Positions 12,103 to 61,352 of a DNA stretch of 64,000 nucleotides are shown one piece after another (within the stretch, counting starts at the first letter, position 1; every line of letters begins with the position of its first letter). Under the pieces are notes generated by a model. The model did not search any database and was not told where the DNA came from. It saw only the letters and a list, made by a program, of their open reading frames with translations. The stretch is taken from the IMG/VR virus record IMGVR_UViG_3300043411_000921, positions 124,001-188,000 of that record; one strand, given 5' to 3'. The position numbers were made by a program, and so were the translations under genes.

Positions 12103-12513
12103 TTAGAGGGTTGGAAGTGAAGAGTGAACAGTGTTCCCAGAAGATGCAACCGCGGCTTCTCTGCCGCCCTTGTTTGACTTCTTGTCTTCTTCTTCTGCTG
12201 GGCGTTCGGAAAGATCTTTCACGGTTCTTGAAGCTTGAACAACCGCTTCAACCATTTTGGCGTGCATGTCTGCCATTGCTGTGGCGAACACGGATTGCTC
12301 AACATCAGAAAGATCATCTGGATCTTTAAGGTTCAATGCCTTGATAATCTCTGCTTCAAATTTCAAGGCTGTTTGCTGCGCTTGAATCGTCAAAGAACGA
12401 ATGGCGTTGAATTTCGTTCCTTCTTGCAACATTTCCATCTTCTTGTCAACAACAAGTGCAACAAGTTTTTTCAGTGCTTCCTCGTTGAGTTTCTGTTTTG
12501 TTTTCATTGTCAC
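12103..12513 (-). CDS. putative internal head protein
   Basis: N-terminal KLNE|E and MLQE|G motifs. Confidence 0.65.
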   Translation of the reverse strand: MTMKTKQKLNEEALKKLVALVVDKKMEMLQEGTKFNAIRSLTIQAQQTALKFEAEIIKALNLKDPDDLSDVEQSVFATAMADMHAKMVEAVVQASRTVKDLSERPAEEEDKKSNKGGREAAVASSGNTVHSSLPTL

Positions 12514-12803
12514 TTGGTTTTCCTTCCAGTCTTTTTTGAGTGTTCCATAACAAAGTTTGAAATCACAGTTTTCACAACGTCCTTCAGTCCAGCCTTAGAA
12601 GTGTCATCTGAATTATCAGTGACAGTTTCTGGAGTGTTTTTGCAAGAAGGGATTGCTGCTGAACCACCTTCTTCTGTTCCAAGACCAACATCACTCATAC
12701 CTGGAAACATTCCGGGAGTGTCCGAATTGCTAGATGGTTCATTAACTGCCACTACCACCGCTTCCCGAATCATTTCTTTCAACTTTTTAACCGTGAGTCT
12801 CAT
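12510..12803 (-). CDS. putative internal head protein
   Basis: MRLTVKKLKEMIRE|A leader, low-complexity body. Confidence 0.65.
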   Translation of the reverse strand: MRLTVKKLKEMIREAVVVAVNEPSSNSDTPGMFPGMSDVGLGTEEGGSAAIPSCKNTPETVTDNSDDTSKAGLKDVVKTVISNFVMEHSKKTGRKTK

Positions 12804-12809
12804 GCTTTA

Positions 12810-13457
12810 TCACTTGCCCTTCTTGGAAAAGGTTTGCTTTAGATAGGATTTCAGGTGTGCTTCCATCATCAAAGCTTCTTCTTCACCCTTTTCACCATCT
12901 TCTCCTTTTGATTTAGCTGGAAATGTGAAGTGAAAGGTTTTTTCAATCTCACCAACGGCTTGTTTGATATTGAATGGAACCTCATCATCCCCAGCCTTTG
13001 CCTGGGCAATCAAATCCTCGGCTTGCCTTCTTTTATCTCCAGCTTGAAGATCAGCAACCAATGTCTTTTTGATATCGGTGACTGTCTTAGCCCCCAAAGC
13101 ACCAATCATATCTTCAATTGGATTAGAAGATGACTCTTCACCTTCAATTCCTCCATCCACTGCACCTTCTGGGTCAAGGTCTTCCATGCCTTCCATCCCA
13201 GGCATTCCTGGTGGAGTTGATGATGTTTCATCTCCTCCAATCCCTGGCATATCCGCCAGTGGATCAGAAGGTATTTCTGGCACTGCTGGATCAGTTGGAA
13301 TTTCAGAAGGTTCTTCCGCTGGGGGGGCTGGGGATGCTTCTGGTGGTGGTGATGGTGTGGAAGATGCTGGAAGAATGCCTTGTTCGAGGAAAAGCTCGAT
13401 TTCTTCAAGGATAAGTGCAAGGATCTTGGCTTGCTTGGGTGTCTGAGAGTGGGACAT
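12810..13457 (-). CDS. Pro/acidic-rich putative head core protein
   Basis: LILEE..FLE|Q leader; TACTTA at 13468-13473. Confidence 0.65.
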   Translation of the reverse strand: MSHSQTPKQAKILALILEEIELFLEQGILPASSTPSPPPEASPAPPAEEPSEIPTDPAVPEIPSDPLADMPGIGGDETSSTPPGMPGMEGMEDLDPEGAVDGGIEGEESSSNPIEDMIGALGAKTVTDIKKTLVADLQAGDKRRQAEDLIAQAKAGDDEVPFNIKQAVGEIEKTFHFTFPAKSKGEDGEKGEEEALMMEAHLKSYLKQTFSKKGK

Positions 13458-13565
13458 GGTATCCATCTAAGTAATGCCCCTTTGAATCCCTCTTCTGGTT
13501 ATCCTCCACAACCTCATCCCCAAACACCTACAAACAAGCCCATTCGAATCCCAGGGAGACCAAAA

Positions 13566-14246: not shown

Positions 14247-14296
14247 GATTTACCTCGTTACCGTTGCTGTTGTTCCGTGCCGTTAACTAGAATTCC

Positions 14297-14325: not shown

Positions 14326-14391
14326 CAATCCCCGAAGCCGCACAACAAATATATCAGCGGTAAACCAACACAGAAAAGGAACAGAAACATC

Positions 14392-23707: not shown

Positions 23708-25189
23708 TCAGTGGAACATGAGGTAGACACCAGCAACGTGAATATCTTTTGCTGGTCTGTCATTTTCTCCTGGGAGGATGATAACGTTCACTCTGTCATC
23801 ATCACCAAGATCATCTTCGACTTGCTCATATTCTGCCATTGTAAGCATTGGGAAGCTGTTTTTGAATTTGACCTTTGAAGAGTTCAAGATCGCCATTTTG
23901 ACTTCCTCCTCTCTGTTGGGCGCATAGGTCCATGCCGAGTCCCCTTCCACGCCAGATTCTTTTTTGCCCACCTCACTCTTTTTGACGATCGCTCCAGTTT
24001 TCATAAGCAGTGTTTTCACAGACTTTGGAACAATTTGGGAGAACATGTCCTTGGTTGGGTCTATTTGGCGTTCTTCTTCTGGGGTGGCACCAAGGGATTT
24101 GCGAAGCAAGAGGTCTTTGTGTGGCATTTTTGCGGCCAGGGATGGCCGCTTTGTATAAGCGTAAAACTTAACGAAATTTTGGAGAGATGCGGGGAGTTCA
24201 CTCTTTACTCTGTCGATGATGTGGTGGGCGAGTTTAAGATAATCTTCCGAATAGAAATCCCCGGAGTCATGCCAACGAATGACAGTCCTGATTTTTTCTT
24301 GAGCATATTTTTGCACGTTTTGAAGGATCTCGTTCACCAATCTTTCCTGATACATTTCTGGATGGTTGTAAAGCATGTTGAGAGTGATGTTCCTGTTTTC
24401 TGAACTGCCCTTGTATTGCACATACCCGCCTTTCGTGGCATAACAAACCTGCATACAACTTCCGGCACCCGGACAAGTGTTGATAACCTTGAACTTGTTA
24501 TCCCGTTCGTCGTATACAAGACCCATGATGGCCGGGATGCCGATATTGAAAAAGGCTTCAAGCTCTCCGGTAGTGCTCTTTTTCATTTTGTCGTTCTGAT
24601 TTAGAAGAGTAAATTTTGGTTTGTTGTAGTTGGTAACAATGGTTTTTAATACCGAGAGGTCAATTTGTTTTTCATTTTGATCAACAACTGGAACAGCCCC
24701 CGTTTCAGTGTCCCTGTTCCTTCTGTTGAGCGCCGAGGCAGGAACAATGGTGTTTGTTGCTGTTGATGGGTGAAGATACGGAAAAGCATTTGGCAATCCT
24801 CCAGCCACTCCTTTTACAACTTTCCCCTTCTTGTTGATTCTATCTGGCCCCCTCTCAGATCTTTTTCCCAGAACCCCAGCCAAATATGCTGGGTCAACTT
24901 CCGTTCCGCGAATATCACTCCCTGGAGTCAGTGGTTTTTGTGGTGGCTTTGGAAACCTCTTAACATAAGGCGCTTCCGAAAGCAACTTGTCCAGCAGTTT
25001 GGTTTGGACTCTGCGGGCGAACATCTCTTGGATTGTTTCGGATTCACCAGGAACTTCTGGTGGCATGTTTCCTGAATACTTTTGGACAAACTCTTCTGGA
25101 GACATAACCTCGGCATTTGCGAAGATACCAGCACCTGAAACTGCTCCCTCGTTCAAGATCAAATAACGAAGTTTCTTTTTCATTGTCAT
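23708..25189 (-). CDS. Gp88-like (radical-SAM-related) protein with putative head-targeting leader
   Basis: TCPGAGSCMQVCYA, IRWHDSGDF, FYAYTK; leader YLILNE|G. Confidence 0.75.
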   Translation of the reverse strand: MTMKKKLRYLILNEGAVSGAGIFANAEVMSPEEFVQKYSGNMPPEVPGESETIQEMFARRVQTKLLDKLLSEAPYVKRFPKPPQKPLTPGSDIRGTEVDPAYLAGVLGKRSERGPDRINKKGKVVKGVAGGLPNAFPYLHPSTATNTIVPASALNRRNRDTETGAVPVVDQNEKQIDLSVLKTIVTNYNKPKFTLLNQNDKMKKSTTGELEAFFNIGIPAIMGLVYDERDNKFKVINTCPGAGSCMQVCYATKGGYVQYKGSSENRNITLNMLYNHPEMYQERLVNEILQNVQKYAQEKIRTVIRWHDSGDFYSEDYLKLAHHIIDRVKSELPASLQNFVKFYAYTKRPSLAAKMPHKDLLLRKSLGATPEEERQIDPTKDMFSQIVPKSVKTLLMKTGAIVKKSEVGKKESGVEGDSAWTYAPNREEEVKMAILNSSKVKFKNSFPMLTMAEYEQVEDDLGDDDRVNVIILPGENDRPAKDIHVAGVYLMFH

Positions 25190-25214: not shown

Positions 25215-25226
25215 TAGTTATAGGTA
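25215..25226. promoter_or_regulatory. abutting late motifs for two divergent genes
   Basis: TAGTTA (+, 25215-25220) and TACCTA (-, 25226-25221). Confidence 0.55.
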
Positions 25227-25558
25227 TGACATCAACACTCGTATCTCTCTCCTCCCTCCTGTTCAAAGAAGCTATGGCTCTATCGACCGGAGGTGCCTCA
25301 TTAGGGGCCTCAAGCCAAGTCGTTGGGGTTGGACCCGTTGCAAAAAAAGGAACGCTCGCAAAAGCCTCCCAGGCCCCTTCCCGGTCACTTGAAGAAATCA
25401 CTGACGAGGAGTTGCAGGAATCTTTTGGTGCGATGCACGAACCTGATTTTGATGGACCTTCGATGCCTGGACTTTGGGCTGGACTCGAAGATGTCAACGC
25501 TCCAGTGAAAACAGACTCACCAGAGCTTCATCCAAAGCGTTCAAGAAACAAACGATAG
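25226..25558 (+). CDS. putative internal head protein
   Basis: LSSLLFKE|A leader, LQE|S; ATG 5 nt after TAGTTA. Confidence 0.6.
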   Translation: MTSTLVSLSSLLFKEAMALSTGGASLGASSQVVGVGPVAKKGTLAKASQAPSRSLEEITDEELQESFGAMHEPDFDGPSMPGLWAGLEDVNAPVKTDSPELHPKRSRNKR

Positions 25559-26619
25559 GCAGCTTCCTCTATCTCAACAATCACACTTCCCTTTGTCCTT
25601 CCAGCAGCAGAAGCAAGAGCAGCAATCATTTCCTTCCCTTCTGAATAAAGGGAATCAGAGTTCAGTTGTTTCTTGAGTTGATAAGCCCAAAGATTTCCAA
25701 GAACACCTGAATCAATTGTTGCTGCTGGAACAAACCTTCTCAAGGTTTCTTCGTCCATTGGGGAAGACAGTCCCAAACTGGTGTAATCAATCATCTTCCT
25801 GAAAGCTTCGTGGATTTCTGGTGGAAGTTTTGAAGCTCTTACCGCCGTCATCAGTTCCATTGGACCGAAATCCCCAAGAAACTTTCTGTCGTAGAGATCT
25901 TGAAGTTTGAACATCTGAATCCAGATGTTGGCTGCTTCTTTGGAAAGAAAAACGTCTGATCTGAGCCAGCCAGGATGAACTGCTTTCATGACAAGTTGAT
26001 AGAGAAGTGGTCCATATCCCTTCTCAGCAACAGAAGCTTTCACAAGAAAAAGTCCTGGAGTTGATTCCGACTCTCTGTATCCGATCATTCCAGCCAAAGC
26101 TTCGCTGGGAATTGTTCCGTCTTCTGGATTCAGGACTGCTTTATCAGAGAACACGAGTGTGATTGATTTTCCTTTGAGTGATCCTCTTGGAATAGCAACA
26201 ACCTTTTCTTTGGAAGTATCCGTCAGAGATTTTGGTCCTTCAAAAAGGATGTCGGAGAGAGATGGATTTTTGAGGAAGAGCCTCTGGCCCTTTATTACGC
26301 CCTTGTCCTTGCACCAACCCCCTCTGACCTCAACAACATTTTTCACAGCCCGCATAAAGCTCCTAGAGGCCGTATCATTTGCCTTGAGGTGCATAACCTC
26401 AACAACCCGATCATCCTCATCAAACCCAATGCAGTCCAAGTCAAAAGGAACGTTCTTCATCCAAAAAGATTGAGGTCTTACCTTTGAGTTTTGGAACAAC
26501 AGCCCGAATCCATCTGGGGGAGGCGTTGTCGAACCCATGAAACCCTTCTTTTTCTGCTCATTTGTGGTGAGTGGCTCAAGGGTTAGTGGAACATAACCAA
26601 GAAAGGCAGGGAAGGGCAT
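25528..26619 (-). CDS. DUF192 domain fused to a GNAT-like C-terminal domain
   Basis: KGFMG, FWMKNVPFDLD, VVEVRGGW; then LSDILFE|G linker and KGYGPLLY. Confidence 0.75.
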   Translation of the reverse strand: MPFPAFLGYVPLTLEPLTTNEQKKKGFMGSTTPPPDGFGLLFQNSKVRPQSFWMKNVPFDLDCIGFDEDDRVVEVMHLKANDTASRSFMRAVKNVVEVRGGWCKDKGVIKGQRLFLKNPSLSDILFEGPKSLTDTSKEKVVAIPRGSLKGKSITLVFSDKAVLNPEDGTIPSEALAGMIGYRESESTPGLFLVKASVAEKGYGPLLYQLVMKAVHPGWLRSDVFLSKEAANIWIQMFKLQDLYDRKFLGDFGPMELMTAVRASKLPPEIHEAFRKMIDYTSLGLSSPMDEETLRRFVPAATIDSGVLGNLWAYQLKKQLNSDSLYSEGKEMIAALASAAGRTKGSVIVEIEEAAYRLFLERFG

Positions 26620-26654
26620 CTTATTTCCAGAATATGTATCCCCAAGCACTCAAG

Positions 26655-26987
26655 ATGTTTTTCCAACGGTTTTCTAAGCCAAATCCTCAACCAAGCTCTT
26701 CCAAACTGGCTCCGTTGAAAACAAGACTGCTCGAACTCAAGGCTGGAGAGTGTGTGAGATTCATCTTTGCAGAAGAGATGGTTTCCCAACTTCTTGCTGC
26801 CAACAGTCCCAGATTTGACAAGGGAAGCCTTGAAAGAGGAACGTTTCTTGCAGTGGTGAAGAGTGTTGGAACAACAAGGATTGGAATTGTTGTTGTTGAG
26901 GTAGTTTGTGTTTCTGGAGGGAGAGTGAAGGAGACTGTTGTAATGGAAACAGACTTGTGTGGGATGGAAGTGATTGGTAAGCCGTGA
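26655..26987 (+). CDS. hypothetical protein
   Basis: beta-rich ORF coupled to the next gene. Confidence 0.6.
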   Translation: MFFQRFSKPNPQPSSSKLAPLKTRLLELKAGECVRFIFAEEMVSQLLAANSPRFDKGSLERGTFLAVVKSVGTTRIGIVVVEVVCVSGGRVKETVVMETDLCGMEVIGKP

Positions 26988-27235
26988 AAGACCTGATTCA
27001 ATTGTTGGTTTTGGAAGCGGCTTATGACGTTGGGCTGTTGAAGCGCATGGGTTACACACACCTTGGAAAAAATCATCGTGTTGGCTCTGATGCTTTCATT
27101 CACACCAAGGACGACGATGACCCAGAATATCACAAAGGTCTCCAAAACAAGATCAATGCAAACCTGGACAAAAAAGATACTCTGAAAGATCCACCAGCGG
27201 TTGGTATATCTCTTCCGAAGAGGATGAAGGGATAA
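26984..27235 (+). CDS. small putative head protein
   Basis: MKDLIQLLVLE|A leader. Confidence 0.55.
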   Translation: MKDLIQLLVLEAAYDVGLLKRMGYTHLGKNHRVGSDAFIHTKDDDDPEYHKGLQNKINANLDKKDTLKDPPAVGISLPKRMKG

Positions 27236-28871: not shown

Positions 28872-29570
28872 ATGAAACTCTATCAGTTCCTATTTGAAAA
28901 CTCTGTTCCAGAAGTCGAGTTCGATCGTGCTGGAACAGAGTTTGTCCCGCCCACCAAAACCATCAAAGCCTACAAACTCTTTCGTGTGAATCCAGCAAAA
29001 CCTGGAGAACTCTTTCCTCTGTTCGTCAATGCCAACCAATCCTTGAAAATTGGTGTTTGGTATGAAGCAGAAGAAGGAGAAAAAGTTATTGACTCCAAGA
29101 CAGGAAAACCCGGAGTCAAGTCGAAGTTGGGAAGGTTGGCTTATAGACCAGGATGGCACGCAGGGGATTATCCCTTTTCCACACACATTGGAATTGAACC
29201 AAAACCCAGTGAAATTTCTGGGAGGATGGCACCTTCGGCCAGGGCAGACAATCAAGTGTGGGCAGAAGTAGAAATGCCAGCAGATTTTGATTGGCAAGAA
29301 GTTGCTGATAGCAGAGCGGAAAAGATCAAGTCTGGTCCCAAGAAAGGACAGATTAGATCTGATACTGCTCACATCACCGATCAAATCCCCAAAGGCGGAC
29401 ATTATCGGTACAAAACCAATCCCAACATGACAGGAAACTGGATCATTGGTGGTGCAATGAAAATCATTCGTGTTCTCTCCGATGAAGAAGTTGAGAAGAT
29501 CAACTCCTCTGCCGGATACAAAGACCTTCCCAGAAAATCTCCCTTCGATCTAAAACGTTACGGCTTCTGA
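28872..29570 (+). CDS. conserved-looking globular protein with head-targeting leader
   Basis: MKLYQFLFE|N; AYKLFR, LAYRPGWH, VWAEVE; TACCTA 6 nt upstream. Confidence 0.75.
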   Translation: MKLYQFLFENSVPEVEFDRAGTEFVPPTKTIKAYKLFRVNPAKPGELFPLFVNANQSLKIGVWYEAEEGEKVIDSKTGKPGVKSKLGRLAYRPGWHAGDYPFSTHIGIEPKPSEISGRMAPSARADNQVWAEVEMPADFDWQEVADSRAEKIKSGPKKGQIRSDTAHITDQIPKGGHYRYKTNPNMTGNWIIGGAMKIIRVLSDEEVEKINSSAGYKDLPRKSPFDLKRYGF

Positions 29571-32931: not shown

Positions 32932-34200
32932 TCAGTCAAAGAACTTCAGATACCCTTCGGGTCCATTCCTTTGGATCCCAATGTTCCCTTCGTGAAAATC
33001 TGTTGGAATCTTGTTCTTCACCATATGAACAATGTCTTGTGCTAGCTTCACATGCCAATCTCCTGCCAACCTCAAAGCAGCTTCCACATCTAACCCAATC
33101 ATTTTTTTGATCGGAATTGAGATGGCTTTGATGAAATTTTTGTTGAGCAAATCTGGGTTGACTTTGTAGTATTTGAGTTTGCTCGGGCTTGGTTCAAATC
33201 CATCGAAATGGACTTTCAAAATGTCCACCAAACCATTCAATCTTCCGAACATATCAGCAGGGAGAATGTTCTCCATCTTGGTTTCACCACTTCCAGTTTC
33301 CAATCGTTCGGTCAAGAACCAGTCAACTCGCAATGCTCCTTTGAAAACCTTGAAGGTTCCGTGGTCATAAACCATTGGCTGGGAAGTTCCGGCTGGGTCT
33401 CCGCTCCTTTGTTGCTGAGCGCCTGGAATCTTTTTGTGCTTGGTTGCGGCGCCGTGACCAGAATCGGTTTCCATCTTAAAAACATATTCGTGTTCATCTG
33501 AGTCTTTGACGAGGAACGCAAGACCAATTACTCCTGCTCCCATAAAAGAAACCGAAGCTGCATCTGAACCAACCGCTTGCATCAAGTAGGGCGTTGCTTC
33601 TTTTGTGAATGTGGCAACGCATTCTTTGTCTTCCTTGCAATTGGCAAAGGTTTTTCCATCATTAATGATCGCGGTCATTGTGTCATTGTTATACCATTCT
33701 CCATAGGCTGGATGATGCTTCCTGGTACGTTTGAGAGCTTCCATCATAGCATCGAACCATTCCGCCCAAGTAACTCCACCATCCTCTGGTTGCACCTGCT
33801 CAAGAAACAAAATTCTGGAAAGGCTTGTTCTAAACTCTCTTTTCTCAACCAATGAAACGAGCTTGTCAACTTTTCCTGCCAAGTCACCAACCCTGGCAGA
33901 CAACTCTTCTGTACCTTCTCCAGACCCAGGTGTGATTGTTCCTGGGCCTTTTGGAATTGATGTTGTTGCCGGTTTGGTTGCACCAGAGGTTGATCTTGCA
34001 TTTGTTGGATCTTGTTTCTTTTGTCCTTGAGCTTGCTGGATAACCTTCACATCATTCCCGATCTGTTTGACTTGTTTTGTCAATGGTTCAAGAGTGTCTG
34101 TGATGGTCTTTCCAATGTCAGAAAGAGCAGAAGTGTCTTCTGGTGCAGGTTGGACTTGTTCTGACAAAAACAGTAGTGAAGAGAGAAGATGTTGTTTCAT
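32932..34200 (-). CDS. protein-kinase-like fold protein with head-targeting leader
   Basis: MGAGVIGLAF, YVFK, DFHEGNI, KFFD; LFLSE|Q and ILFLE|Q; TATTTA at 34220-34215. Confidence 0.72.
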   Translation of the reverse strand: MKQHLLSSLLFLSEQVQPAPEDTSALSDIGKTITDTLEPLTKQVKQIGNDVKVIQQAQGQKKQDPTNARSTSGATKPATTSIPKGPGTITPGSGEGTEELSARVGDLAGKVDKLVSLVEKREFRTSLSRILFLEQVQPEDGGVTWAEWFDAMMEALKRTRKHHPAYGEWYNNDTMTAIINDGKTFANCKEDKECVATFTKEATPYLMQAVGSDAASVSFMGAGVIGLAFLVKDSDEHEYVFKMETDSGHGAATKHKKIPGAQQQRSGDPAGTSQPMVYDHGTFKVFKGALRVDWFLTERLETGSGETKMENILPADMFGRLNGLVDILKVHFDGFEPSPSKLKYYKVNPDLLNKNFIKAISIPIKKMIGLDVEAALRLAGDWHVKLAQDIVHMVKNKIPTDFHEGNIGIQRNGPEGYLKFFD

Positions 34201-34291
34201 GGGGAGGGTGTTGGTAAATACCAATATTCGTGGGATGGAGCATGTTAGACTGCTGGAGTCTAGCAACACCAAGAAAGGGAAGCCACAAACA

Positions 34292-35910: not shown

Positions 35911-36140
35911 AAGTTTTGAACGAAAGGGTTTTGGGGGTTCAAGGGCCTTGGCTTATCAAGGGTCGCTATGTCCAATACTCAACAAGGGAACAAGGAACCT
36001 TTCACAGGCCCGAACTTGTTTTTGAAAAGCAGCCTGGGATTCAGCAGGGCCTAGAGGTTGGCTTCTCCCTTGAAGATATTGGAAGATTTCAAGCATTGTT
36101 GAAACAATATGCTGCTGAGAACTATCACTCCACTTCCTAG
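35907..36140 (+). CDS. hypothetical protein
   Basis: ATGA-coupled, GGAG RBS. Confidence 0.6.
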   Translation: MKVLNERVLGVQGPWLIKGRYVQYSTREQGTFHRPELVFEKQPGIQQGLEVGFSLEDIGRFQALLKQYAAENYHSTS

Positions 36141-36904
36141 AACAATCCTTCCAACTCACTCCTGATCTGCTCTCTGCTCTTCCTAATCGAATCCACAACC
36201 TTCCTCTCTTGATAAGAAAGAGGGGAAACAGGAATGGATTTATCTCCCAATCCCAGAGAAGCAGGATACCTTAACACCTTCTCTCCATTCTCTTCTGCCG
36301 CTTCCAACAAGGATGTTGTTTCGTAGTAGGTGCAAACAGGTTCATTTAAGAACCATTGCTTTAACTCGGAGTAGTGTTCCAGGTACCCATCCAGGGTATT
36401 TCCGATCAAGTAGCTGGAAAACATCCTTCCTCCAGACTCCCCTCTTTTCCTTGTGGTGTCGATACTCAGTTCTTTTGGTGCATACACGGAGAGGTACAAC
36501 AACTCATATCCGTTCACCTTGCAGAACTCAATTTCGTCTCTATACCTTCTCTGCCCTGTGCCTTCGATAACAAAAGACTTGAGCTGACTTTCAAACCCTC
36601 GCTGAAGGCCCTTGGCGTGTTTTCTGGAGTCGTCTCTGTATCTTTTCAGGGTCGCATCCACATCGGGAGGTTATCGCCCAGAAAAGGCGTTTTGAACCGT
36701 TATGCCCCTGCTTCTCAAATCCTCATCCGAGTTAATCAAATCCTCTAGCTTTTCATCCAGGTTCACAAAACCCACATTGGCCTTCTTCAAGATTTCTTTG
36801 ACGAAGAATGTTTTACCTGCCCCCAGTGGTCCTTGAAGCAACAAGATTTTGGGTTTGGTATTGCTTGAACTCTCGAACAGAAGGCGTGCTAAACTGGTAT
36901 TCAC
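36137..36904 (-). pseudogene. zeta-toxin/AAA_33-like P-loop kinase interrupted by one in-frame TAA (36671-36673)
   Basis: GPLGAGKT, FVNLD, FVIEGT, RKRGESGGR all in one frame; leader ARLLFE|S. Confidence 0.7.
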
Positions 36905-39501: not shown

Positions 39502-39504
39502 TCT

Positions 39505-40611: not shown

Positions 40612-40832
40612 TCCACAGCCTCTTCATCATCATCGCAAATAATTTCTTGCTGATAAAGTGCGCTAAATCGAGTTTCCATGATCTCTCCTTTGTGAACCCA
40701 CAAAGACCAATATACTCTTCGTTCTTTGTCCACTCTGATAATCGTCTCGATTTCATCTGTTGGATCTTCTACATCCACCAGCAACATACCCGGATGGAGG
40801 TCGTCAAAAGATTTGATTGGCCTTGTTTTCAT
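40608..40832 (-). CDS. PG-x-LL array protein
   Basis: MKTRPI..LHPGMLL. Confidence 0.65.
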   Translation of the reverse strand: MKTRPIKSFDDLHPGMLLVDVEDPTDEIETIIRVDKERRVYWSLWVHKGEIMETRFSALYQQEIICDDDEEAVE

Positions 40833-41029
40833 TGTGAATCTTCATCCTCTTCCATTGGAACGATCTCATACCAATCTTCCACATAGTTTTTACTTACCAC
40901 AATGACATTGAACCCATTGGAGTCTGCTGCGAGAAGGCGAACGGTGTTTTTTAGTGGATCTTCGTCAAGATATACACGGAACCGCGAAGGAATGTTGTAC
41001 TTGTTTTTGAGCAGCGTTCCTGGTTTCAT
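40829..41029 (-). CDS. PG-x-LL array protein
   Basis: MKPGTLL, TAATG-coupled to the upstream gene. Confidence 0.65.
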   Translation of the reverse strand: MKPGTLLKNKYNIPSRFRVYLDEDPLKNTVRLLAADSNGFNVIVVSKNYVEDWYEIVPMEEDEDSQ

Positions 41030-42134: not shown

Positions 42135-43322
42135 TTATCTGGCCTGTGCGATTTTTTCTGGGAGGGCTACATTCCAGAGATTTGCCTTGGCTGTCCTTGA
42201 CTTGGTAAACCCCAAAGACTCCAACTTCTTTGCCATTAGCTGAGGCTTATAGTTCGAAACATGAACCAAGCATTTCTCTTCCTTCAAAAACAACATCCTC
42301 GCTTGGATAATCTCCTGAAGGGAAGACTTGGGCTCTTTATCTGTCCAGGGTCGAAGGGAAGAAAAAAACTCCCGGTCCCCATCCTTCAAAGCTCGAACCT
42401 CTTCCAACCCAATCTTCAAATTAGGCTTGTTCTTCTTCAACCAAGAGAAGTAAATCTCATTGACCTTCTCAAAAGATGTATTGAATGCCGGATACTTCGT
42501 TACCGAGTCAATAACTTGTGTAGCTTCATCAAAAAATTCACAATAGTTTTCAAAATGTTTTAGGTAAGCGGAGCAAAGTTTTTCTAGTTGAGCACGTTCT
42601 GCCCCTTTGGCTCTGTCAGAGGAAAGAAGTCTGTGGAGAACAATGTTTCTAACGCCAACTGGGACGGGTTCGGTTTTCATTTTTTCTCTGACATGCTCGA
42701 TTGTTCCAGTTGACCAGTCAGACAGAGAGGACTTAGCCGCCATCTTTGATTTGGTCGTTGTTGTTTTTTGTGTCTTGGTTGATTTCCTTGATTTTAGTGC
42801 GTTGAGGAATTTTTCTGGTAGGTCTTGAATTTCATTCGGACAGACTTCGCCATAAGTGCCACGAGTATGTTTGCTTGGTGGAATAACAACATAACCGTCT
42901 TGGCCTCGTGTATCTACCTTGTCCGCCAAATGGGATGCAGTGTTTTTTGTCGGGGTCGATGTCCAAAACCAAAAATGCCACCCACCAGATCCAGTCCGAT
43001 AGTGAAAAGTCGAAGAAAGTTCCTTTATGATTGGGTGATCTGCCGCATCAACATCAACAACAATAAGATATTTCCCAGTTTTTTCAGATTTTCGTCCTGT
43101 TGCGAGGCCAAAGTTCATTTTGTGACTGAGAGAAAACCACTCTTCAACCTTTTCTGGTTTATTGCTGGCAATGATTTTCCAATTGTAACGAAAGAGTGGG
43201 TGTTTTCCAGGAGAAGCGCAGTTTTGTTCGCCACACGAACAAGTGTTGTTAAGCCGAATCGAATAAAGTGGAAGTATGTGAAATTTGTTTTCCAGAATGA
43301 TTTGTTTAATTGATGATGGCAT
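42135..43322 (-). CDS. bifunctional DNA primase/polymerase (Prim-Pol)
   Basis: CSCG..C.SPGKHP, NFGLATG, VVDVD, TGSGGWH, DTRGQDGYVVIPPS, GVRN. Confidence 0.9.
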   Translation of the reverse strand: MPSSIKQIILENKFHILPLYSIRLNNTCSCGEQNCASPGKHPLFRYNWKIIASNKPEKVEEWFSLSHKMNFGLATGRKSEKTGKYLIVVDVDAADHPIIKELSSTFHYRTGSGGWHFWFWTSTPTKNTASHLADKVDTRGQDGYVVIPPSKHTRGTYGEVCPNEIQDLPEKFLNALKSRKSTKTQKTTTTKSKMAAKSSLSDWSTGTIEHVREKMKTEPVPVGVRNIVLHRLLSSDRAKGAERAQLEKLCSAYLKHFENYCEFFDEATQVIDSVTKYPAFNTSFEKVNEIYFSWLKKNKPNLKIGLEEVRALKDGDREFFSSLRPWTDKEPKSSLQEIIQARMLFLKEEKCLVHVSNYKPQLMAKKLESLGFTKSRTAKANLWNVALPEKIAQAR

Positions 43323-49534: not shown

Positions 49535-49849
49535 TCACTCGGTTTCGTCTTCGTCTCCGTCGTCTGTGGGAGTCTCAACAGGTGCAACAACGGCTTTCTT
49601 GTGTTCGAGACGTGCGAGTCGGGTTTCTTCCCTTGCGGCCAGAGTTGCTTTTCCAACGAGCACACCCAGAGTGCGCAGAGCCCTCGTTCCCTTCCTCACA
49701 CGAACACCGGCAGACTGATTTCCCTTCACCGCAAGCTTGTTGACTTCTGCATCAACCTGCTCAACCAAAACCCTAAATTCAGTCCACAAGTCCAAAACTT
49801 GCTTCTCACCAGCAGTCATTTCCCTAGCAGCCTTTGTCTTCTTTGCCAT
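49535..49849 (-). CDS. histone H1/Hc1-like small DNA-binding protein
   Basis: KGNQSAGVRVRKG motif in a helical hairpin. Confidence 0.75.
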   Translation of the reverse strand: MAKKTKAAREMTAGEKQVLDLWTEFRVLVEQVDAEVNKLAVKGNQSAGVRVRKGTRALRTLGVLVGKATLAAREETRLARLEHKKAVVAPVETPTDDGDEDETE

Positions 49850-49956: not shown

Positions 49957-50409
49957 TTAGCGGCGGGTGATGACTTGGTAGAGAACGGAACCGACAAAGG
50001 CAAGAACGCTAGCAACGAGCGTCCAGTAAATTCTGGAAAGGTGTTTGCGGAGCCTCACAAGGTCATTGAGTTCTTCAAGTTGTTTTCCAGCGACACGCTC
50101 AATGGAATCCTTGAACTTCTTCATGTCTGTGACATCGACAACAATTGCGGGCATCTCTTTAACTTTTCCTTCGAGATCGCTGAGGTTGTTGTCGAGCTTT
50201 GACTCAATCGTTTTGACTCTGGAGAACAAGCCGTTGTCCGGTCCGTAAAGAGCTTCTGCGACCTTATCCAACTTTTTCCCCGACTCCTCTTGTTTGTCCT
50301 GGATGTGTTCAATCATAACACACATACGGTCAAACCCACCATTCAACGCCTTGGATTCCCTTATTTTCCTAGCGATACTCTCCAGAAGTTCTCTTTCACT
50401 TTGAGTCAT
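49957..50409 (-). CDS. coiled-coil protein with C-terminal TM anchor (late)
   Basis: GAGGTG RBS, TATTTA upstream, C-terminal hydrophobic helix. Confidence 0.7.
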   Translation of the reverse strand: MTQSERELLESIARKIRESKALNGGFDRMCVMIEHIQDKQEESGKKLDKVAEALYGPDNGLFSRVKTIESKLDNNLSDLEGKVKEMPAIVVDVTDMKKFKDSIERVAGKQLEELNDLVRLRKHLSRIYWTLVASVLAFVGSVLYQVITRR

Positions 50410-50456
50410 ATCGTCACCTCGCCGGAATAAATACACCAGGAAAAAGGTTGACAAAA

Positions 50457-51830
50457 ATGTCGCACAATTATTTCGCTGAGAAACAAGAGGTTCAAGACAA
50501 TCTAATTCGGGCTGTTGACAAGCTGGAGAGACAAATGAGTGCGATCACTCTTGCTATCAGTTCTCCAAACCAAACATATCTCACCGAAAATTCTTTTCAA
50601 CTTCTTACCAAACTTCTTCTTCCGTCCAACCCTTGGGAAAGAATGCTCTATCAGGAGCTTGTTCAGAAGTGTTATCAATTGGAAATGCGTTGTCAGGGTT
50701 CATCCCCGATGTTTCTCAGAGCCTTTGCTGCTGCTGCAAGAGAAATCACGAGGAAACAAGGGTCTTACCGTGAGCTTGTGGAGGATAACCAGAAGAGCAA
50801 CCAAAGATACTCTCAAGAAATACTTCCTCACTGCTACCCTTCCTCCCCATCTTTCATCAAAGAAGAAATACAAAAAGCCTGTCAAAACCTCTCAATCCCA
50901 GCAACCGCTGTCGAAGAGGCAATCAAGTTGGCTGGGGTTGAGGGAAATATTGTCTTGGCAGAGGAAGAAGTCCCATCTGTTCTGGTTGAGTTGCAATTTG
51001 GCTATAACTTCTCAATGAACCCATTCAAAGGTTTCATCCCAACAAATGGAACTTGGACGAGAGCGGAAACAAAAATCATGCTGGTAGACGGAATGCTAGA
51101 ATCTGTTTCTGAAATTGACAAGCTTCTAAATGGCTGCTATTCCAGCAAAATCCCGGTGATCTTGATTGCACAAGGTTTTTCAGAAGAGGTAGTTGCAACC
51201 CTTCATGCAAATTACTCCCGAGGTTCTTTGGATGTTTTTCCTTTGAGAACTCAACAGAACTTGGAAGCAATCAACATTATGAATGACATTGCTGTTGTTT
51301 CTGGAACTGATGTTATCAGCACGCTCAAAGGAGAACGTTTGGGAACAGTGGGTTTGGATTCCCTTGGTTCGGTTGAAAAGGCTTCAATCACCGGAAACGT
51401 TTTGACAATTCACAATTCCAGAACCAGAGGAAATGTTCTTTCTCACCTTGGTTATCTGGAGAAGAGAAGGGTTGAGCAAGCAGAAACATCACAGGTTTCA
51501 GATTTGGCAGATTTGACTTCAAAGAGGATTCAGAATCTTTTGGCACATCTTGTGAAGGTAACGATTCCAAAGGGGGACGTTAATCGCTTCAGGGGGATTA
51601 TAGACAACGCCATTCGGGCTTGTCGTACTTCCATCACCTACGGTTATTGCAAGCCGCTAGAAATCAACCTGGAGCGATTGGAGCCCATGTGGAGAAAAGC
51701 TCACCTGGGTGCGATCAAAAATCTGGAAGGTGAGAAAGTTTCGAGTGTTGGTTTGTGGTTGTCTGTGAGGATGGGAGTGGAACTTGCAACGGCTTATTTC
51801 ACTGCTGCTGGGGCATTGGTCAGGAACTAA
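50457..51830 (+). CDS. divergent GroEL/Cpn60-like chaperonin
   Basis: Apical-domain-like DGMLESVSEI..PVILIAQGFSEEVVATL..N, DIAVVSG, LGSVEK; no GDGTTT. Confidence 0.7.
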   Translation: MSHNYFAEKQEVQDNLIRAVDKLERQMSAITLAISSPNQTYLTENSFQLLTKLLLPSNPWERMLYQELVQKCYQLEMRCQGSSPMFLRAFAAAAREITRKQGSYRELVEDNQKSNQRYSQEILPHCYPSSPSFIKEEIQKACQNLSIPATAVEEAIKLAGVEGNIVLAEEEVPSVLVELQFGYNFSMNPFKGFIPTNGTWTRAETKIMLVDGMLESVSEIDKLLNGCYSSKIPVILIAQGFSEEVVATLHANYSRGSLDVFPLRTQQNLEAINIMNDIAVVSGTDVISTLKGERLGTVGLDSLGSVEKASITGNVLTIHNSRTRGNVLSHLGYLEKRRVEQAETSQVSDLADLTSKRIQNLLAHLVKVTIPKGDVNRFRGIIDNAIRACRTSITYGYCKPLEINLERLEPMWRKAHLGAIKNLEGEKVSSVGLWLSVRMGVELATAYFTAAGALVRN

Positions 51831-52392
51831 GAACGGTCTTTGCCAACTCTTTGTGTGTCTTCATTGAGACATAAAGCTTCATGGATGGCATTGACTCACA
51901 CAGAACTCCCAGATCCAACATTGTCATCTTTGACAGTTCTTCAGCGATCATTGAAACAAGTTGCTCGGAACCAACCAGGAAGCTGTGTGAGTTCGCTTTG
52001 GAGATGCAAAACTCCAGAAGTTTTTGTGAATCTTTTCCGTAAGCCTCTTGGAGTGTTTGCTTTGGACTATGTTTTTTCTGAAGCATCTTGACGGCTTCAC
52101 CAACACATTTCCCGACAGCTTCAGAGACAAAGGTATAATTCAAGAGAGTGGATTCAACCAAGGCTGGATCCCTTCTTGACTCACTCAAATTCTTTCCTGT
52201 TTCCATTGTAAGGTGAAAGAGGGTTGGAATTTGTTTTTGGTATTTGGAAACAACCTCCTCCAGCTTCTCGATTGATTCTGCTACGGCCAAGGTTTCTGTT
52301 TGTTCGTGGAGGAAGAGGTCAATTGGGTAGATTCCTTTTGAAACCAGAGCCTCTTGTGCTTCAACCAATCTGTTTGCGTATTCTTTCCACAT
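51820..52392 (-). CDS. putative internal head protein
   Basis: TACTTA at 52437-52432; RLVE|A, LSE|S, LQE|A. Confidence 0.6.
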   Translation of the reverse strand: MWKEYANRLVEAQEALVSKGIYPIDLFLHEQTETLAVAESIEKLEEVVSKYQKQIPTLFHLTMETGKNLSESRRDPALVESTLLNYTFVSEAVGKCVGEAVKMLQKKHSPKQTLQEAYGKDSQKLLEFCISKANSHSFLVGSEQLVSMIAEELSKMTMLDLGVLCESMPSMKLYVSMKTHKELAKTVLSS

Positions 52393-58732: not shown

Positions 58733-58734
58733 TG

Positions 58735-59505
58735 TTAGCTCGTTGAGGATGATCCTACGCTACCACCACCAGAAGGAACACCGCCACCATTATCTGGACC
58801 AGAGTTGCCAGCCCTTGGAGCAGCAGGATAATCACCTTCAACCTGCTTCTTCGTCTTGGCTGTAAGATCAAAGTCACGCTCCAAAATATTCACCATCTCT
58901 TTAGCAAGTCTTGGCGAGTAGTTCTTTGAAATGTAAAACATTGCTCGATTTAGAATCAAGGATTTTGGATCAATGAGTGTTTGATAGTTGTTCACAAGCC
59001 TAGCAACGCCTTCAGCAAACTTCCTGATGTTGATTTTTGGAACGGGAACAACTTCTGGGGGATTGCTTTCAGTGTCGTCTCCTCCATCGTCACCGCCACC
59101 AAACGGATCATCTCCACCACCCATGTCCATATCACCAGCATCATCGACAGGTGGTTCTGGTGGAGCTTCTTGCTCAAACAAGAACTTTCCCATCGAGAAC
59201 AAACGTTTTCCTTTTTTCCTTTCGGTCAATGGGGGTGTTTGAATGTTGTCTTTGACTTGTGCAGGATCAACAGGAAGTGCCCCATCCGTTTCCGGCATAT
59301 CCAGAGGGACTGACTCTCTTTCAAACTGCATGAGATACTTGTCAATCTTCTGATCAACAGAAGCTTCTGTCTCTGACAAGGAATCAGAAACACTGGGAAG
59401 CTGAAGAATCTGTTCTGGGCTGGAGACATAGGGCTTTCCATCTCCACCACCCTCTTCCTGTTCTCTCAACAAGAACTCGCTGAAACGTTTCTTTCTCATA
59501 ATCAA
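58735..59505 (-). CDS. acidic putative head core protein
   Basis: FLLRE|Q, LTE|R, FLFE|Q; Asp/Gly-rich linkers. Confidence 0.7.
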   Translation of the reverse strand: MIMRKKRFSEFLLREQEEGGGDGKPYVSSPEQILQLPSVSDSLSETEASVDQKIDKYLMQFERESVPLDMPETDGALPVDPAQVKDNIQTPPLTERKKGKRLFSMGKFLFEQEAPPEPPVDDAGDMDMGGGDDPFGGGDDGGDDTESNPPEVVPVPKINIRKFAEGVARLVNNYQTLIDPKSLILNRAMFYISKNYSPRLAKEMVNILERDFDLTAKTKKQVEGDYPAAPRAGNSGPDNGGGVPSGGGSVGSSSTS

Positions 59506-60317
59506 AGGATCCTTCCACCAAGAACTTCAACTGGAGGAGATGATTGTGGCAATCCAACGCTCGTCTCCTTCTCATTTGAAACAACAGCTTGGACAGAGTA
59601 AAGCTGGTGGAGCTTCGCCATCTCAGCAATCAACATTCTCATTTCAACAACATTCCAATTGATTTCTCGCATGGAGCGATTGAGATATTCAAGCTTCTCT
59701 CCTGGGAAATCAAGGAACCAAGCGTGGTGCCATGTGTCAAGAACCAGCACTGGAATTGCCATCAATGGAAGATGAAGGGTATGACCTTCAACAAAAGTGT
59801 TGAAATAACGTTGTTTGAACGGATCGAAGTAACAAACAGCCCAACCTTCTCTGGACGCCATTCCGCAAGCTCTGAAATCCAATTGCCACTGGTCGAAGGT
59901 TCCCCAATCCCTTGAAAGACGCATAAAAGGAATGCTGTCAGCACGAATCTCGGAGTTCAAATCTCCCGTGTTGGTGAACAACAACTCGTGGAACTTCACT
60001 CCGTTCATGTTGTGAGTCTCATCAATCTTCAACCTTCTGAACTCTGAATCGTTTGGGTTATCTGCATCTGTCTTTGGAACAGAATCCAGCTTCGCAGAAA
60101 TTTTGTTGTGACTTGTGACGTAGCTGTTATACAGCTTTTCGTGGTTTTCCTTTGTTGTGGGGGATGAAACATCGCCCTTCAAAATAAATGAACGAGGCAT
60201 CAACACAGCCGCTTCTGAAACAACAGCTTTTGCCGCTTGTGCTACCTTTCCATCCAAAACTGTTCCAACAGCTTCTCGAATGATCTTCTGGAGATCTTTT
60301 GCATTGAGGGTCGTCAT
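59502..60317 (-). CDS. Fe/Mn superoxide dismutase-like protein with head-targeting leader
   Basis: NHEKLY, FHELLF, GWA, PVLVLDTWHHAW, INW; leader DLQKIIRE|A. Confidence 0.85.
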   Translation of the reverse strand: MTTLNAKDLQKIIREAVGTVLDGKVAQAAKAVVSEAAVLMPRSFILKGDVSSPTTKENHEKLYNSYVTSHNKISAKLDSVPKTDADNPNDSEFRRLKIDETHNMNGVKFHELLFTNTGDLNSEIRADSIPFMRLSRDWGTFDQWQLDFRACGMASREGWAVCYFDPFKQRYFNTFVEGHTLHLPLMAIPVLVLDTWHHAWFLDFPGEKLEYLNRSMREINWNVVEMRMLIAEMAKLHQLYSVQAVVSNEKETSVGLPQSSPPVEVLGGRIL

Positions 60318-60323
60318 GTGTTC

Positions 60324-61352
60324 TTACTTCTTCTTCCTTGATCTTACAGTCTCTGTAAATAGACCAGAAAGGGGTGCATGAGCATCATCATCCAATCCAA
60401 GCCTGTCTGCAATGTTCAGCATTCCTCTATCTTCCGCAGCATCCCCAGCCCTTGAAACTCTTGTGTCTCCGAGGGAAGGGAACACCCCCTGATAACTCGG
60501 ACCCGACTCCCCAAGAGGGAACAGGATTTCTCTTATTGATTCCCCTTTGGATCCCTCTTCTGGTAATGTTCCACTAGACAACATCCCTGACAACTTTCTC
60601 ATCGGGTTTTCTCGTGTGTTCTCCAAGAAGACGTAAGCGAGGGCATCACACGTCACGGATCCTTTTGCGAGCACCTCTTGTTGATATTCGTAGGTGTCCT
60701 CCCCGACCTCCAGGTACTTCGCAGCCTCAAACATGTTGAAAAAGAAGCTGTTTTCCTCGGTCTTGCACCTTCCAAGGACAACAAATCCCTTGGGAATATC
60801 ACCTTCCATGCGAACCTGACCAAAAAGCTTGGGCATGGACTCTTCCCTCCTGGACCAACTGGTGATATTATTCCCGGCTCTAGGTGACATAATAGCGCCA
60901 CGAACGACTCCTTCCTTACCAGGAGTCGTCAAGCCTGTTAGACGCCTCAGATAATCCTCCTGGATGCCAAAGAGAACCCTCCAGGCATATCCCTCTCTCA
61001 CCTGAAAGAATTTCTTGTACCAACCCTGCTCCTTCATCTTCCACATCAGGTCAACCATTTTTTCCAGGCCATCCCTGTTGTTCCATGAATAGTAGTTGCC
61101 AAGAGCAGCAATCAACCTCTTTTCTTCGGGAGAATCCTCTTCCTGAATATTTTCCTCGTAAACGTTCTTCCTCATCCACCCAAAAAGATATTCCCCAAAA
61201 GGTGCGTCTTTCGGAGCTTCTGGTGGAGGAGAATCCTTCACAACAGCAACCTTCTTTTTTGGTTTGGGTGGCAGCCAAGGCTTGTCTGGATCAAACTCCC
61301 AATCATCCCATCCGTCACTTTCCCATAAAAACCTTGAAATTCTAGGCGTCAT
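60324..61352 (-). CDS. putative ADP-ribosyltransferase-like protein with head-targeting leader
   Basis: AWR...TSWS...YQQEVL in R-S-E order; leader SRFLWE|S. Confidence 0.55.
   Translation of the reverse strand: MTPRISRFLWESDGWDDWEFDPDKPWLPPKPKKKVAVVKDSPPPEAPKDAPFGEYLFGWMRKNVYEENIQEEDSPEEKRLIAALGNYYSWNNRDGLEKMVDLMWKMKEQGWYKKFFQVREGYAWRVLFGIQEDYLRRLTGLTTPGKEGVVRGAIMSPRAGNNITSWSRREESMPKLFGQVRMEGDIPKGFVVLGRCKTEENSFFFNMFEAAKYLEVGEDTYEYQQEVLAKGSVTCDALAYVFLENTRENPMRKLSGMLSSGTLPEEGSKGESIREILFPLGESGPSYQGVFPSLGDTRVSRAGDAAEDRGMLNIADRLGLDDDAHAPLSGLFTETVRSRKKK

Follow-up and report, generated by a model that had tools for sequence, protein, structure and literature searches.

Candidate T4-style capsid-targeting leaders on scattered genes of a large T4-like phage from metagenomes

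In a 64-kb stretch of metagenomic phage DNA (hereafter the window, meaning the whole stretch that was analyzed), a preliminary description had noted about 14 otherwise unrelated open reading frames (ORFs), dispersed between positions 12103 and 61352, whose products begin with a short leader ending in a hydrophobic residue, any residue, and Glu. This observation raises the question of whether such leaders are capsid-targeting sequences (CTSs) similar to those of the internal proteins of phage T4, which would place an assortment of unrelated proteins inside the phage head. The current analysis indicates that about ten scattered genes probably encode leaders of this type, and a T4-type scheme of targeting and cleavage can be accepted with reasonable confidence as the best explanation of their common N termini. 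Although T4 already provides the precedent for such a mechanism, neither a set of this size nor this cargo has been described before.

The leader signal and the head module

All 13 of the 13 N termini quoted in the preliminary description were found in place and on the correct strands, and the independent gene calls of the Joint Genome Institute (JGI) agree for the ORFs of 493, 422, 342, 271, 254, 232, and 83 amino acids (aa). As predicted from these sequences, the leader is a short amphipathic helix that contains Lys or Arg residues, occupies the first 9 to 21 residues of the protein, and ends in (L/I/F)-x-E, as exemplified by MKLYQFLFEN and MRLTVKKLKEMIREA. In the leaders cited below, a slash marks the predicted cleavage site.

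The statistical weight of this motif depends on its definition. The loose form, [ILVFM]-x-E within the first 22 residues, is not enriched, being found in 31 of the 81 N termini of the window against 26.6 expected (p=0.18). The stricter form Φ-Φ-x-E, where Φ is a hydrophobic residue, is enriched in the same 81 N termini (20 against 9.1 expected, p=5e-4), particularly when followed by a small or polar residue in the P1' position (15 against 4.1 expected, p=1e-5), both stricter definitions having been chosen post hoc, after the examples had been seen. A leader matrix of 12 columns (P10 to P2') was derived from 198 non-identical leaders found in homologues of three window families in other phages. 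With this matrix, 11 of the 81 N termini score higher than 99% of the internal windows, against 0.8 expected, and 9 of 78 do so after the removal of the three training families. In a shuffle test, with the initiator Met masked and residues 2 to 28 permuted within each protein so that its composition was kept, 12 N termini reach scores of at least 7.0, compared to 1.9 +/- 1.3 in the shuffled sets and a maximum of 8 in 1000 shuffles. The shared hydrophobic-X-E leader of the preliminary description thus holds in its matrix-defined form and fails in its loose form.

Two well-studied phages served as controls. Phage lambda, which is devoid of a T4-type protease, has no matrix-positive N termini among 70. 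In a partial T4 proteome of 66 proteins, seven are matrix positive, namely gp24, IPII, IPIII, gp30, e.7, vs.5, and vs.7; Alt and gp67 score slightly under the threshold. The first three are established substrates of the T4 protease. The ligase gp30, e.7, vs.5, and vs.7 are not known to be substrates or head proteins, and yet their N termini fit the pattern (e.g., MILKILNE/I). Since T4 proteins that are not known to be packaged are found among the positives, a leader match alone is only moderately predictive; the leader signal itself is real and accompanies phages of the T4 type. The matrix, built solely from metagenomic proteins, still ranks gp24, IPII, and IPIII of T4 near the top.

The preliminary description had also seen the motif recurring at domain linkers. 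The four sites that it cited do exist, but such internal sites are equally common inside housekeeping enzymes, and they were rejected as a general signal; they stand only where they are conserved, in the SOD and GP88 families described below.

These data bear on the simplest alternative, that the shared N termini reflect chance or amino acid composition; short amphipathic helices of the MK...L..E type would then be common at protein N termini and have no shared function here. The absence of enrichment in the loose motif, the abundance of core-motif hits inside unrelated enzymes, and the assignment of positive scores to T4 gp30 and to the Prim-Pol protein of the window are all in line with this explanation. 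It is disfavored, and must be considered very unlikely, in view of the excess over the shuffled sets, the empty lambda control, the position-fixed conservation of the motif in 113 SOD-like homologues and 91% of the GP88 homologues, and the presence of near-identical leaders on head-module proteins.

The window comes from the IMG/VR record UViG_3300043411_000921, which corresponds to the 241,399-bp JGI contig Ga0451708_0000004; near-identical contigs are present in other samples. A megablast comparison of 20 kb of the window with cultured phages found no close relative. According to the gene map, Pfam and PHROGs assignments, and JGI gene calls, the left part of the window contains large structural genes and a T4_baseplate gene. 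The window also includes a long stretch of nucleotide metabolism and replication genes (TK, dUTPase, FEN, DnaB, RNR, ThyA, DHFR, DnaJ, Prim-Pol, PhoH, and PurA), as well as a tail-spike gene and numerous ORFs with no match. Directly past its right end, the contig codes for the gp19 tube protein, a pair of sheath paralogues, gp13, a capsid protein of the Gp23 family, a protease of the Peptidase_S77 family, and a portal of the T4 type. With its counterparts in cultured phages, such as Microcystis phage Mel-JY01, Flavobacterium phage immuto, and cyanophages, the capsid protein shares only 30 to 42% identity; therefore, sequence comparison assigns this virus to the distant, large T4-like phages, with a predicted head of the T4 type.

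The genes for Portal_T4, Peptidase_S77, and Gp23 are located on the same contig as the window, ~25 kb past its end. Thus, a prohead protease, which the preliminary description proposed to look for elsewhere in the genome, has been found: it is a gp21-type S77 peptidase (Pfam family PF03420) encoded at L007:3722-4342 (numbers with an L prefix refer to loci outside the window). Its GELDH and PGISSRALGS segments align with GELNH and PGVSSRGLGS of T4 gp21, with the catalytic His and Ser residues retained, and it matches the PDB entry 5JBL with an E-value of 4.8e-15; that entry represents a crystallized mutant, in which the GELNH and SSRGLG motifs appear in mutated form. T4 gp21 cleaves its substrates after L/I-X-E and removes a propeptide of 65 residues from gp23; an Asp in the P1 position prevents processing in T4 and leaves targeting intact (PMC9026906). 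In a pairwise alignment, the segment GGSSMLNE/SL of the capsid protein (L007:7904-9871) coincides with GSFLTE/AE of T4 gp23, which is the T4 cleavage site. The protease itself has ...LLLKE/V at its N terminus, where T4 gp21 has LLIE/T, and a 712-aa scaffold-like protein contains ALIE/A and AVLE/A. Accordingly, the same motif is present at the aligned, predicted processing sites of the capsid protein, the scaffold-like protein, and the protease.

Several small proteins of the head module carry leaders as well. The 84-aa protein starts with MKITVKQLKTLIRE/A, which is near-identical to MRLTVKKLKEMIRE/A of a 97-aa window protein; a 122-aa protein starts with MKKILKQIIKE/A, and a 203-aa protein starts with MKKSLNQIISE/S. 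These three, along with a 297-aa protein, score at least 7, and none of the head-module proteins was part of the matrix training. Among the sheath, tube, tail, and neck proteins encoded near the protease, none scores above the threshold. The likeness extends to T4, where IPII and IPIII (from NC_000866) start with MKTYQEFIAE/A, compared to MKLYQFLFE/N in the 232-aa window protein. Together, the S77 protease, the portal, the Gp23-family protein, the capsid site, the head-module leaders, and the four portable families described in the next section provide strong in silico support for a predicted T4-like leader that is used for capsid targeting and cleavage, as the preliminary description had proposed.

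Leader-bearing proteins

The 271-aa Fe/Mn superoxide dismutase (SOD)-like protein is encoded on the minus strand at 59502..60317, with TATTTA at 60356-60361. Its leader has a matrix score of 10.0 and belongs to an N-terminal extension of ~45 aa that contains two predicted sites, IIRE/A at residue 14 and VVSE/A at residue 35. The protein matches Sod_Fe_C in Pfam (1.1e-14) and the PDB entry 1COJ (3.7e-23, residues 50 to 228), the latter alignment starting only at residue 50. Its segments NHEKLY, FHELLF, and DTWHHAW align with the metal-ligand motifs (His, His, Asp, and His), which supports the predicted fold; the N-terminal domain is too diverged to be recognized by Pfam, and the residues adjoining the ligands differ (H30/H31 are replaced by L/Y). 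At the level of sequence, the assignment to this family is solid, and the place that the preliminary description gave an SOD among the leader-bearing proteins is confirmed by the same Pfam and PDB matches and by the score of its leader. The 120 homologues listed are 41 to 99% identical to it, and the full-length ones have N-terminal extensions of up to ~60 residues. In all 113 of the 113 homologues for which the K[ED]xH motif could serve as an anchor, [LIV]-x-E is found ~20 residues before that motif, with Ala in the P1' position in 101 of them. Closer relatives keep the first site too, in the form (I/V)I(Q/K/R)E/A.

The 493-aa protein of the GP88 family (PF17338) is encoded at 23708..25189 by a lone minus-strand gene located between RNR and plus-strand genes. 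Its leader, MTMKKKLRYLILNE/G, has a matrix score of 12.1, and the Pfam match (1.5e-25, residues 196 to 378) lies downstream of it, so that the Gp88-like leader protein of the preliminary description is retained; as judged from its sequence, the family assignment is solid. A second predicted site, KLLSE/A, is located at residue 72. Among the GP88 homologues, 102 of 112 (91%) have Φ-x-E within the first 15 residues, compared to 23% of background windows, and their leaders are highly diverse (MKLYRFLFE/Q, MRYYELLE/S, MKITELLRE/S, and MNFKELFE/G). The second site, Φ-Φ-x-E[AVGS] (e.g., LYEILFE/A), is present in 23 of the 25 close relatives. No exact late hexamer (see below) was found upstream of this gene.

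The highest matrix score in the window, 16 to 19, belongs to the leader MKLYQFLFE/N of the 232-aa protein (28872..29570, plus strand), which is followed by a linker and a domain of ~200 aa, referred to here as KAYKLFR. The family phrog_30118 matches this protein from residue 29 only. The KAYKLFR domain is conserved at ~55 to 60% identity across hundreds of proteins; in some of them, it is combined with T4-like leaders (MKSFQEFIAE/E, MKTFKEFVSE/E, or MLSYKEYITE/Q), and elsewhere it is leaderless or embedded 60 to 200 residues inside multi-domain proteins. The contig that encodes the MKSFQEFIAE version also carries genes for T4 gp59, gp32, and the late co-activator Trans_coact. The Roseobacter podophage CRP-212 has this domain within a 1203-aa protein that is encoded next to the portal gene. 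In an AlphaFold2 (AF2) model of the 232-aa protein (predicted local distance difference test [pLDDT] score, 88.8), the leader forms a separate low-confidence helix. This model has no neighbor in the PDB according to Foldseek, and its BFVD matches fall within the interior of viral proteins of 1383 to 1442 aa. A possible ADP-ribosyltransferase (ART) function of the 232-aa protein was considered and dropped, given that the Foldseek search against the PDB yielded nothing below E=0.3 and the TM values for Cholix and Arr were ~0.2. This gene, too, has no exact late hexamer upstream.

The 342-aa protein (60324..61352, minus strand) has the leader MTPRISRFLWE/S and is encoded by the first gene of a three-gene leader operon, with TAGTTA at 61358-61363, only 5 nt from the ATG. 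In the matrix, the protein itself scores low (1.1); many of its homologues start with leaders such as MKLYEILF, MIKLYNLLFE/A, MILRDILFE/E, or MRITESQLRRIVRSSLLE/R. This is the protein that the preliminary description had labeled as an ART. In the family, R125 and E226 are invariant, and SWT and ExE motifs appear in the consensus of 41 sequences, in an order that fits R-S-E. Language-model searches of a protein atlas point to DRAT, ADPrib_exo_Tox, and Mod_ADP_RT (0.85 to 0.91, TM of 0.46 or less). Neither this protein nor 41 of its relatives have any Pfam hit, the profile search of the PDB was negative, and hhalign comparison with ModA, ModB, and Alt of T4 gave a probability of 0.2. Thus, the ART label is not borne out by any of these profile methods, and the 342-aa protein can be regarded as a candidate ADP-ribosyltransferase only in the sense of a lead.

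In these four families (SOD-like, GP88, 232-aa, and 342-aa), the leader appears to behave as a portable module under selection. It lies outside the folded domain, as indicated by the start of the homology at residue 50 in the SOD-like protein, at residue 29 for the phrog match, and at residue 196 for the GP88 domain.

The gene for the 254-aa protein (58735..59499, minus strand) abuts the SOD-like gene on the same strand. This acidic protein, rich in Gly, Asp, and Pro, has the leader MRKKRFSEFLLRE/Q (score of 8.7 to 9.8) and an internal KFLFE/Q, in which FLFE/Q is the top-scoring internal site of the window; overall, it resembles an internal or core protein. Three consecutive minus-strand genes at 12103..13466 code for Pro/Glu-rich proteins of 218, 97, and 134 aa with the leaders ...ILALILE/E, MRLTVKKLKEMIRE/A, and MKTKQKLNE/E and matrix scores of 9.5, 12.6, and 10.7, respectively. 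Their operon, with TAGTTA at its head (14284-14289), runs on into the T4_baseplate gene (PF12322, 11150-12052).

Such proteins suggest another alternative, in which the leaders do target the prohead, but many of their carriers are core, scaffold, or internal structural proteins that are degraded, expelled, or kept as filler, with any enzymes acting in the particle (e.g., the SOD-like protein protecting the packaged DNA) or not at all. Consistent with this possibility, neither the trio at 12103-13466 nor the 254-aa protein has an enzymatic domain; all four are acidic, low-complexity proteins rich in Pro and Gly, which resemble gp67, gp68, and the internal proteins of T4. Once cleaved, most of the T4 core fragments exit from the head (PMC9026906), and double cleavage sites are what would be expected of disposable propeptides. 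However, a well-conserved globular domain follows the leader in the SOD-like, GP88, 232-aa, and 342-aa proteins, the KAYKLFR domain is found inside large virion-associated multi-domain proteins of a class that is predicted to be injected (PMC5512222), and Alt and the internal proteins of T4 are ejected (PMC9026906). On balance, this explanation appears unlikely.

The 422-aa protein (32932..34200, minus strand, with the same start in the JGI call) has the leader MKQHLLSSLLFLSE/QVQP, with a matrix score of 9.3, and a near-repeat of this motif, RILFLE/QVQP, at residue 134, so that the motif is present twice; TATTTA is found at 34215-34220. Its 289 C-terminal residues have Phage_T7_kinase and Pkinase as neighbors in the language-model protein atlas, and the single-sequence AF2 model is unusable (pLDDT of 33). 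The C-terminal domain is possibly kinase-like, which should be treated as a lead only. A second kinase candidate of the preliminary description is the P-loop NTPase gene with a GTG start and the N terminus ARLLFE/S (36137..36904, minus strand), which is broken by an in-frame TAA at 36671-36673, between NAFSGR and PPDVDATLKRY. JGI calls two genes here (77 and 174 aa), the P-loop Pfam hits fall on the 77-aa piece, and no gene is called at this place in a near-identical contig. This gene is probably decaying rather than recoded. The plural kinases of the preliminary description are thereby reduced to one broken gene and one language-model lead. Its remark that several genes of the set are inserted singly against the local strand is valid for the GP88, 422-aa, and P-loop genes.

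The start codon of the 422-aa gene overlaps, at 34199/34200, with that of a plus-strand gene for a 240-aa ClpP-like protease (PF00574, 34199..34921, JGI call), and the hexamer of the 422-aa gene falls within the part that codes for ClpP. A ClpP is also encoded by a distant relative (L009:699-1367). This back-to-back arrangement and the occurrence of ClpP in the relative are compatible with the idea that the leader is some other signal, such as a degron or tag for the phage ClpP-like protease; alternatively, it could be a nucleotide feature that assists translation of leaderless late mRNAs, as several of the late hexamers lie ~5 nt from the ATG and the first codons could affect initiation. Either version is hard to reconcile with the conservation of the leader at the amino acid level despite its varied residues and lengths, with second sites located 35 to 130 residues in, far from the start codon, and with the match to the T4 CTS and the gp21 consensus in a phage that also has an S77 protease. 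In addition, the tail-spike and sheath genes stand behind the same hexamer and have no leader. Such an alternative signal is very unlikely.

Of the remaining candidates, one that was absent from the preliminary list is a 150-aa protein encoded on the minus strand at 49957..50409, which starts with MTQSERELLE/SIARKIRE/S (score of 8.5 to 9.2) and has TATTTA at 50428-50433, 24 nt upstream of the gene. As both the hexamer and the leader are present, it is a plausible addition to the set. Three others are doubtful as leader proteins. The 110-aa ORF at 25226..25558 (plus strand; 115 aa in the JGI version) has LLFKE/A with a score of only 1.0 and TAGTTA at 25215-25220, 5 nt before the ATG. The sequence that follows its Glu, AMALSTGGASLGASSQVVGV, is identical in 12 of 20 residues to the predicted mature N terminus of the capsid protein, SLSLSTGGAGLASSGQVAGF, so that this ORF may encode a mimic or derivative of the capsid N-terminal arm. 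The 83-aa ORF with a GTG start (26984..27235, plus strand, VKDLIQLLVLE/A, score of 6.0) is called by JGI and has no promoter-like hexamer. The 190-aa ORF (51820..52392, minus strand, MWKEYANRLVE/A), whose start is uncertain, has a score of 2.4, a shuffle p of 0.32, and no family hits. The 254-, 422-, 190-, 134-, 97-, and 218-aa proteins have no match in Pfam or PHROGs.

The P-loop gene, the Prim-Pol gene, and the DUF192 fusion are probably not members of the set. The Prim-Pol protein (42135..43322, minus strand) has the N terminus MPSSIKQIILE/N with a score of 13.3; with its Pfam Prim-Pol domain starting at residue 11 and the T4 ligase gp30 behaving similarly in the control, it was set aside as a likely false positive. 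The match is probably a coincidence, with a packaged primase-polymerase as the residual option. The DUF192 fusion (25528..26649, minus strand) has the Pfam DUF192 domain at residues 24 to 124 and an internal DILFE/G at residue 137 (site score of 9.9); it was listed in the preliminary description as a leader-bearing enzyme and has an internal site only, with no leader at its N terminus. In sum, good support exists for the trio at 12103-13466 and for six further proteins, namely the 342-aa, SOD-like, 254-aa, GP88, 232-aa, and 422-aa proteins. Overall, about ten ORFs can be counted as well supported and five as doubtful, the latter including the P-loop gene, the Prim-Pol gene, and the DUF192 fusion; within the preliminary list, the weak entries are those at 25226, 26984, 36904, and 52392.

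The analysis also revealed several features of the genome that are separate from the leader set. Outside the window, at L004:6750-13027, two adjoining genes encode tail-sheath paralogues that, with 1047 and 1008 aa, are ~1.5 times as long as T4 gp18, and a histone-deacetylase-family gene (L004:14226-15095) is located just outside the window, with the tube gene on one side and PurA on the other. The window itself encodes a histone H1-like Hc1 protein (PF07432) at 49535-49849 on the minus strand. The region of 42 to 46 kb, with the Prim-Pol gene, a 318-aa ORF, and the tail-spike gene, is a G+C-rich island (52 to 55%, compared to ~45% elsewhere), and a GIY-YIG/NUMOD homing-endonuclease gene (47154-48020, minus strand) directly follows the tail-spike gene. 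Finally, ~11 small minus-strand ORFs of 66 to 113 aa are arranged head to tail at 38263-41029; most of their products start with MK(T/P)xP..., and they have in common a PG(T/M)LL motif near residues 12 to 16 and acidic C termini. Similarity by BLASTP is detectable for one pair only (38% identity), and these ORFs probably represent a fast-diverging tandem gene family.

The late hexamer and the proposed mechanism

The TAnnTA motif of the preliminary description can be refined to TA[GT]TTA. In the window, 12 of its 14 copies are located 6 to 70 nt upstream of a start codon on the same strand, a territory that covers ~4% of positions, so that their placement is far from random. Of the 12 copies in the head module, 8 stand before the genes for the capsid protein, gp13, both sheath proteins, and other late proteins, and those in the window precede the gene for a 1130-aa structural protein, the tail-spike gene, and five leader ORFs (342-aa, SOD-like, 422-aa, 150-aa, and 110-aa). 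An exact hexamer of its own is found for 5 of 13 leader genes, compared to 6 of the 67 remaining genes (p=0.014 by the Fisher test), and four more leader genes are located downstream of a hexamer in the same operon. The preliminary claim that most leader genes have their own late motif is correct for these five, can be extended to the four through their operons, and does not apply to the rest. Likewise, the portable combination of promoter and leader that it proposed is realized in some genes and is missing in others, such as the GP88 and 232-aa genes, which lack the hexamer. The hexamer is often found ~5 nt from the ATG (e.g., at 61358-61363, 25215-25220, and 4013-4018 and at L007:11692), and no Shine-Dalgarno sequence is evident upstream of most genes. 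For these two reasons, the late mRNAs are suggested to be leaderless or nearly so.

The T4-type scheme of targeting and cleavage predicts the following sequence of events. The leader genes would be expressed late, several of them from their own TA(G/T)TTA, whose short distance from the ATG would make the mRNA almost leaderless. The leader of the encoded protein could then bind the scaffold core of the assembling prohead, and, after closure of the shell, the gp21-type S77 serine protease would cut behind the Glu residue. In the SOD-like, GP88, and 422-aa proteins, a second cut 20 to 120 residues further in would free the mature protein inside the head. The mature proteins can be expected to remain with the DNA and would probably be ejected into the host. 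Core binding, cleavage, retention in the virion, ejection, and any role in host takeover or anti-defense are all inferred. A broader possibility, which is somewhat doubtful at present and can be proposed only tentatively, is that in this large, uncultured branch of T4-like phages the CTS has turned into a general address label, by which an entire enzyme kit would be loaded into the capsid (a metal-binding SOD-like protein and GP88, kinase-like, ART-like, and polyvalent-type domains).

Several observations weigh against this interpretation of the leaders. The motif is short, and the matrix that defines it also flags gp30, e.7, vs.5, and vs.7 of T4 and the Prim-Pol protein of the window, and internal hits to its core are equally common in PurA, RNR, and DnaB. 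Structural constraints, and not cleavage, could explain why (L/I)-x-E-A is invariant before the SOD fold. The number of TA[GT]TTA copies in the window is what would be expected by chance (14, compared to 14.2 in dinucleotide-preserving shuffles), the exact hexamer stands before only those 5 of 13 leader genes and before neither the GP88 gene nor the 232-aa gene, and it is a late promoter by presumption only. In addition, the phage is known solely from metagenomes.

If the leaders work as they do in T4, packaged and probably injected proteins could be predicted from sequence in uncultured T4-like phages, for which virion proteomics is impossible. The Pfam family GP88, phrog_30118, and the 342-aa family would then gain their first functional context as head-delivered proteins, and an SOD-like enzyme, along with a possible kinase and a possible ART, would be added to the unusual cargo carried by phages. 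Should the general address label prove true, the injected "first-strike" proteome could be read from metagenomic sequence by the leader alone. A virion-borne SOD would point to oxidative stress, in the particle or in the fresh host, as a selective pressure that is met by a pre-made protein.

Comparison with known systems

The closest parallel is provided by T4, in which IPI, IPII, IPIII, and Alt have leaders of ~10 residues with L/I-x-E followed by a small residue (MKTYQEFIAE/A, compared to MKLYQFLFE/N here). The S77 protease is homologous, the motif at the capsid cleavage site is aligned, the leader is attached to otherwise unrelated cargo, and T4 Alt represents an enzymatic cargo. The CTS has already been proposed as an evolutionary device for the loading of varied proteins (PMC9026906, PMC3012670), and the natural, varied leaders described here are comparable with the T4 CTS that is used for packaging in engineered T4 particles. 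There are also clear differences. The candidates are more numerous in this phage (~10 in 64 kb and 4 in the head module), their leaders are longer and more basic (e.g., MRLTVKKLKEMIRE), and several of the proteins have a second site that would define a propeptide of 35 to 130 residues. Part of the cargo consists of domains that are not known from T4 (SOD-like, GP88, kinase-like, and polyvalent-protein-type), and the genes are scattered among the structural, replication, and nucleotide-metabolism regions. Finally, the presumed late hexamer is TA(G/T)TTA and not TATAAATA, which has 0 copies here.

In phiKZ, 201phi2-1, and SPN3US (gp175/gp245), many head propeptides are cut after Glu by a diverged gp21 homologue, the sites are redundant, and a bolus of proteins is ejected (PMC9026906; PMC5694885, PMC10052503). 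Proteases of the phiKZ type cut after S/A(/G)-x-E (PMC9026906). In contrast, the P3 residue is L/I/V/F in the phage described here, as it is in T4: it is L/I/V in 113 of the 113 sites of the SOD family and hydrophobic in the leaders of the window. With no small residue at P3, processing of the S/A/G-x-E type was ruled out. Furthermore, the head genes of this phage match T4 Pfam families directly, and the portions of the genome that were inspected showed no virion RNA polymerase.

A third parallel is with the polyvalent proteins (Iyer et al. 2017) and the Dar proteins of phage P1, in which effector domains are delivered together with the DNA; polyvalent proteins are predicted to be injected (PMC5512222). 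Some of the multi-domain proteins that contain the KAYKLFR domain also have PF18760, PF19846, PF13151, or PF04266 domains. The difference lies in the arrangement: instead of being joined in one giant polypeptide, each of the domains in the phage described here is encoded by a separate small gene with its own candidate tag.

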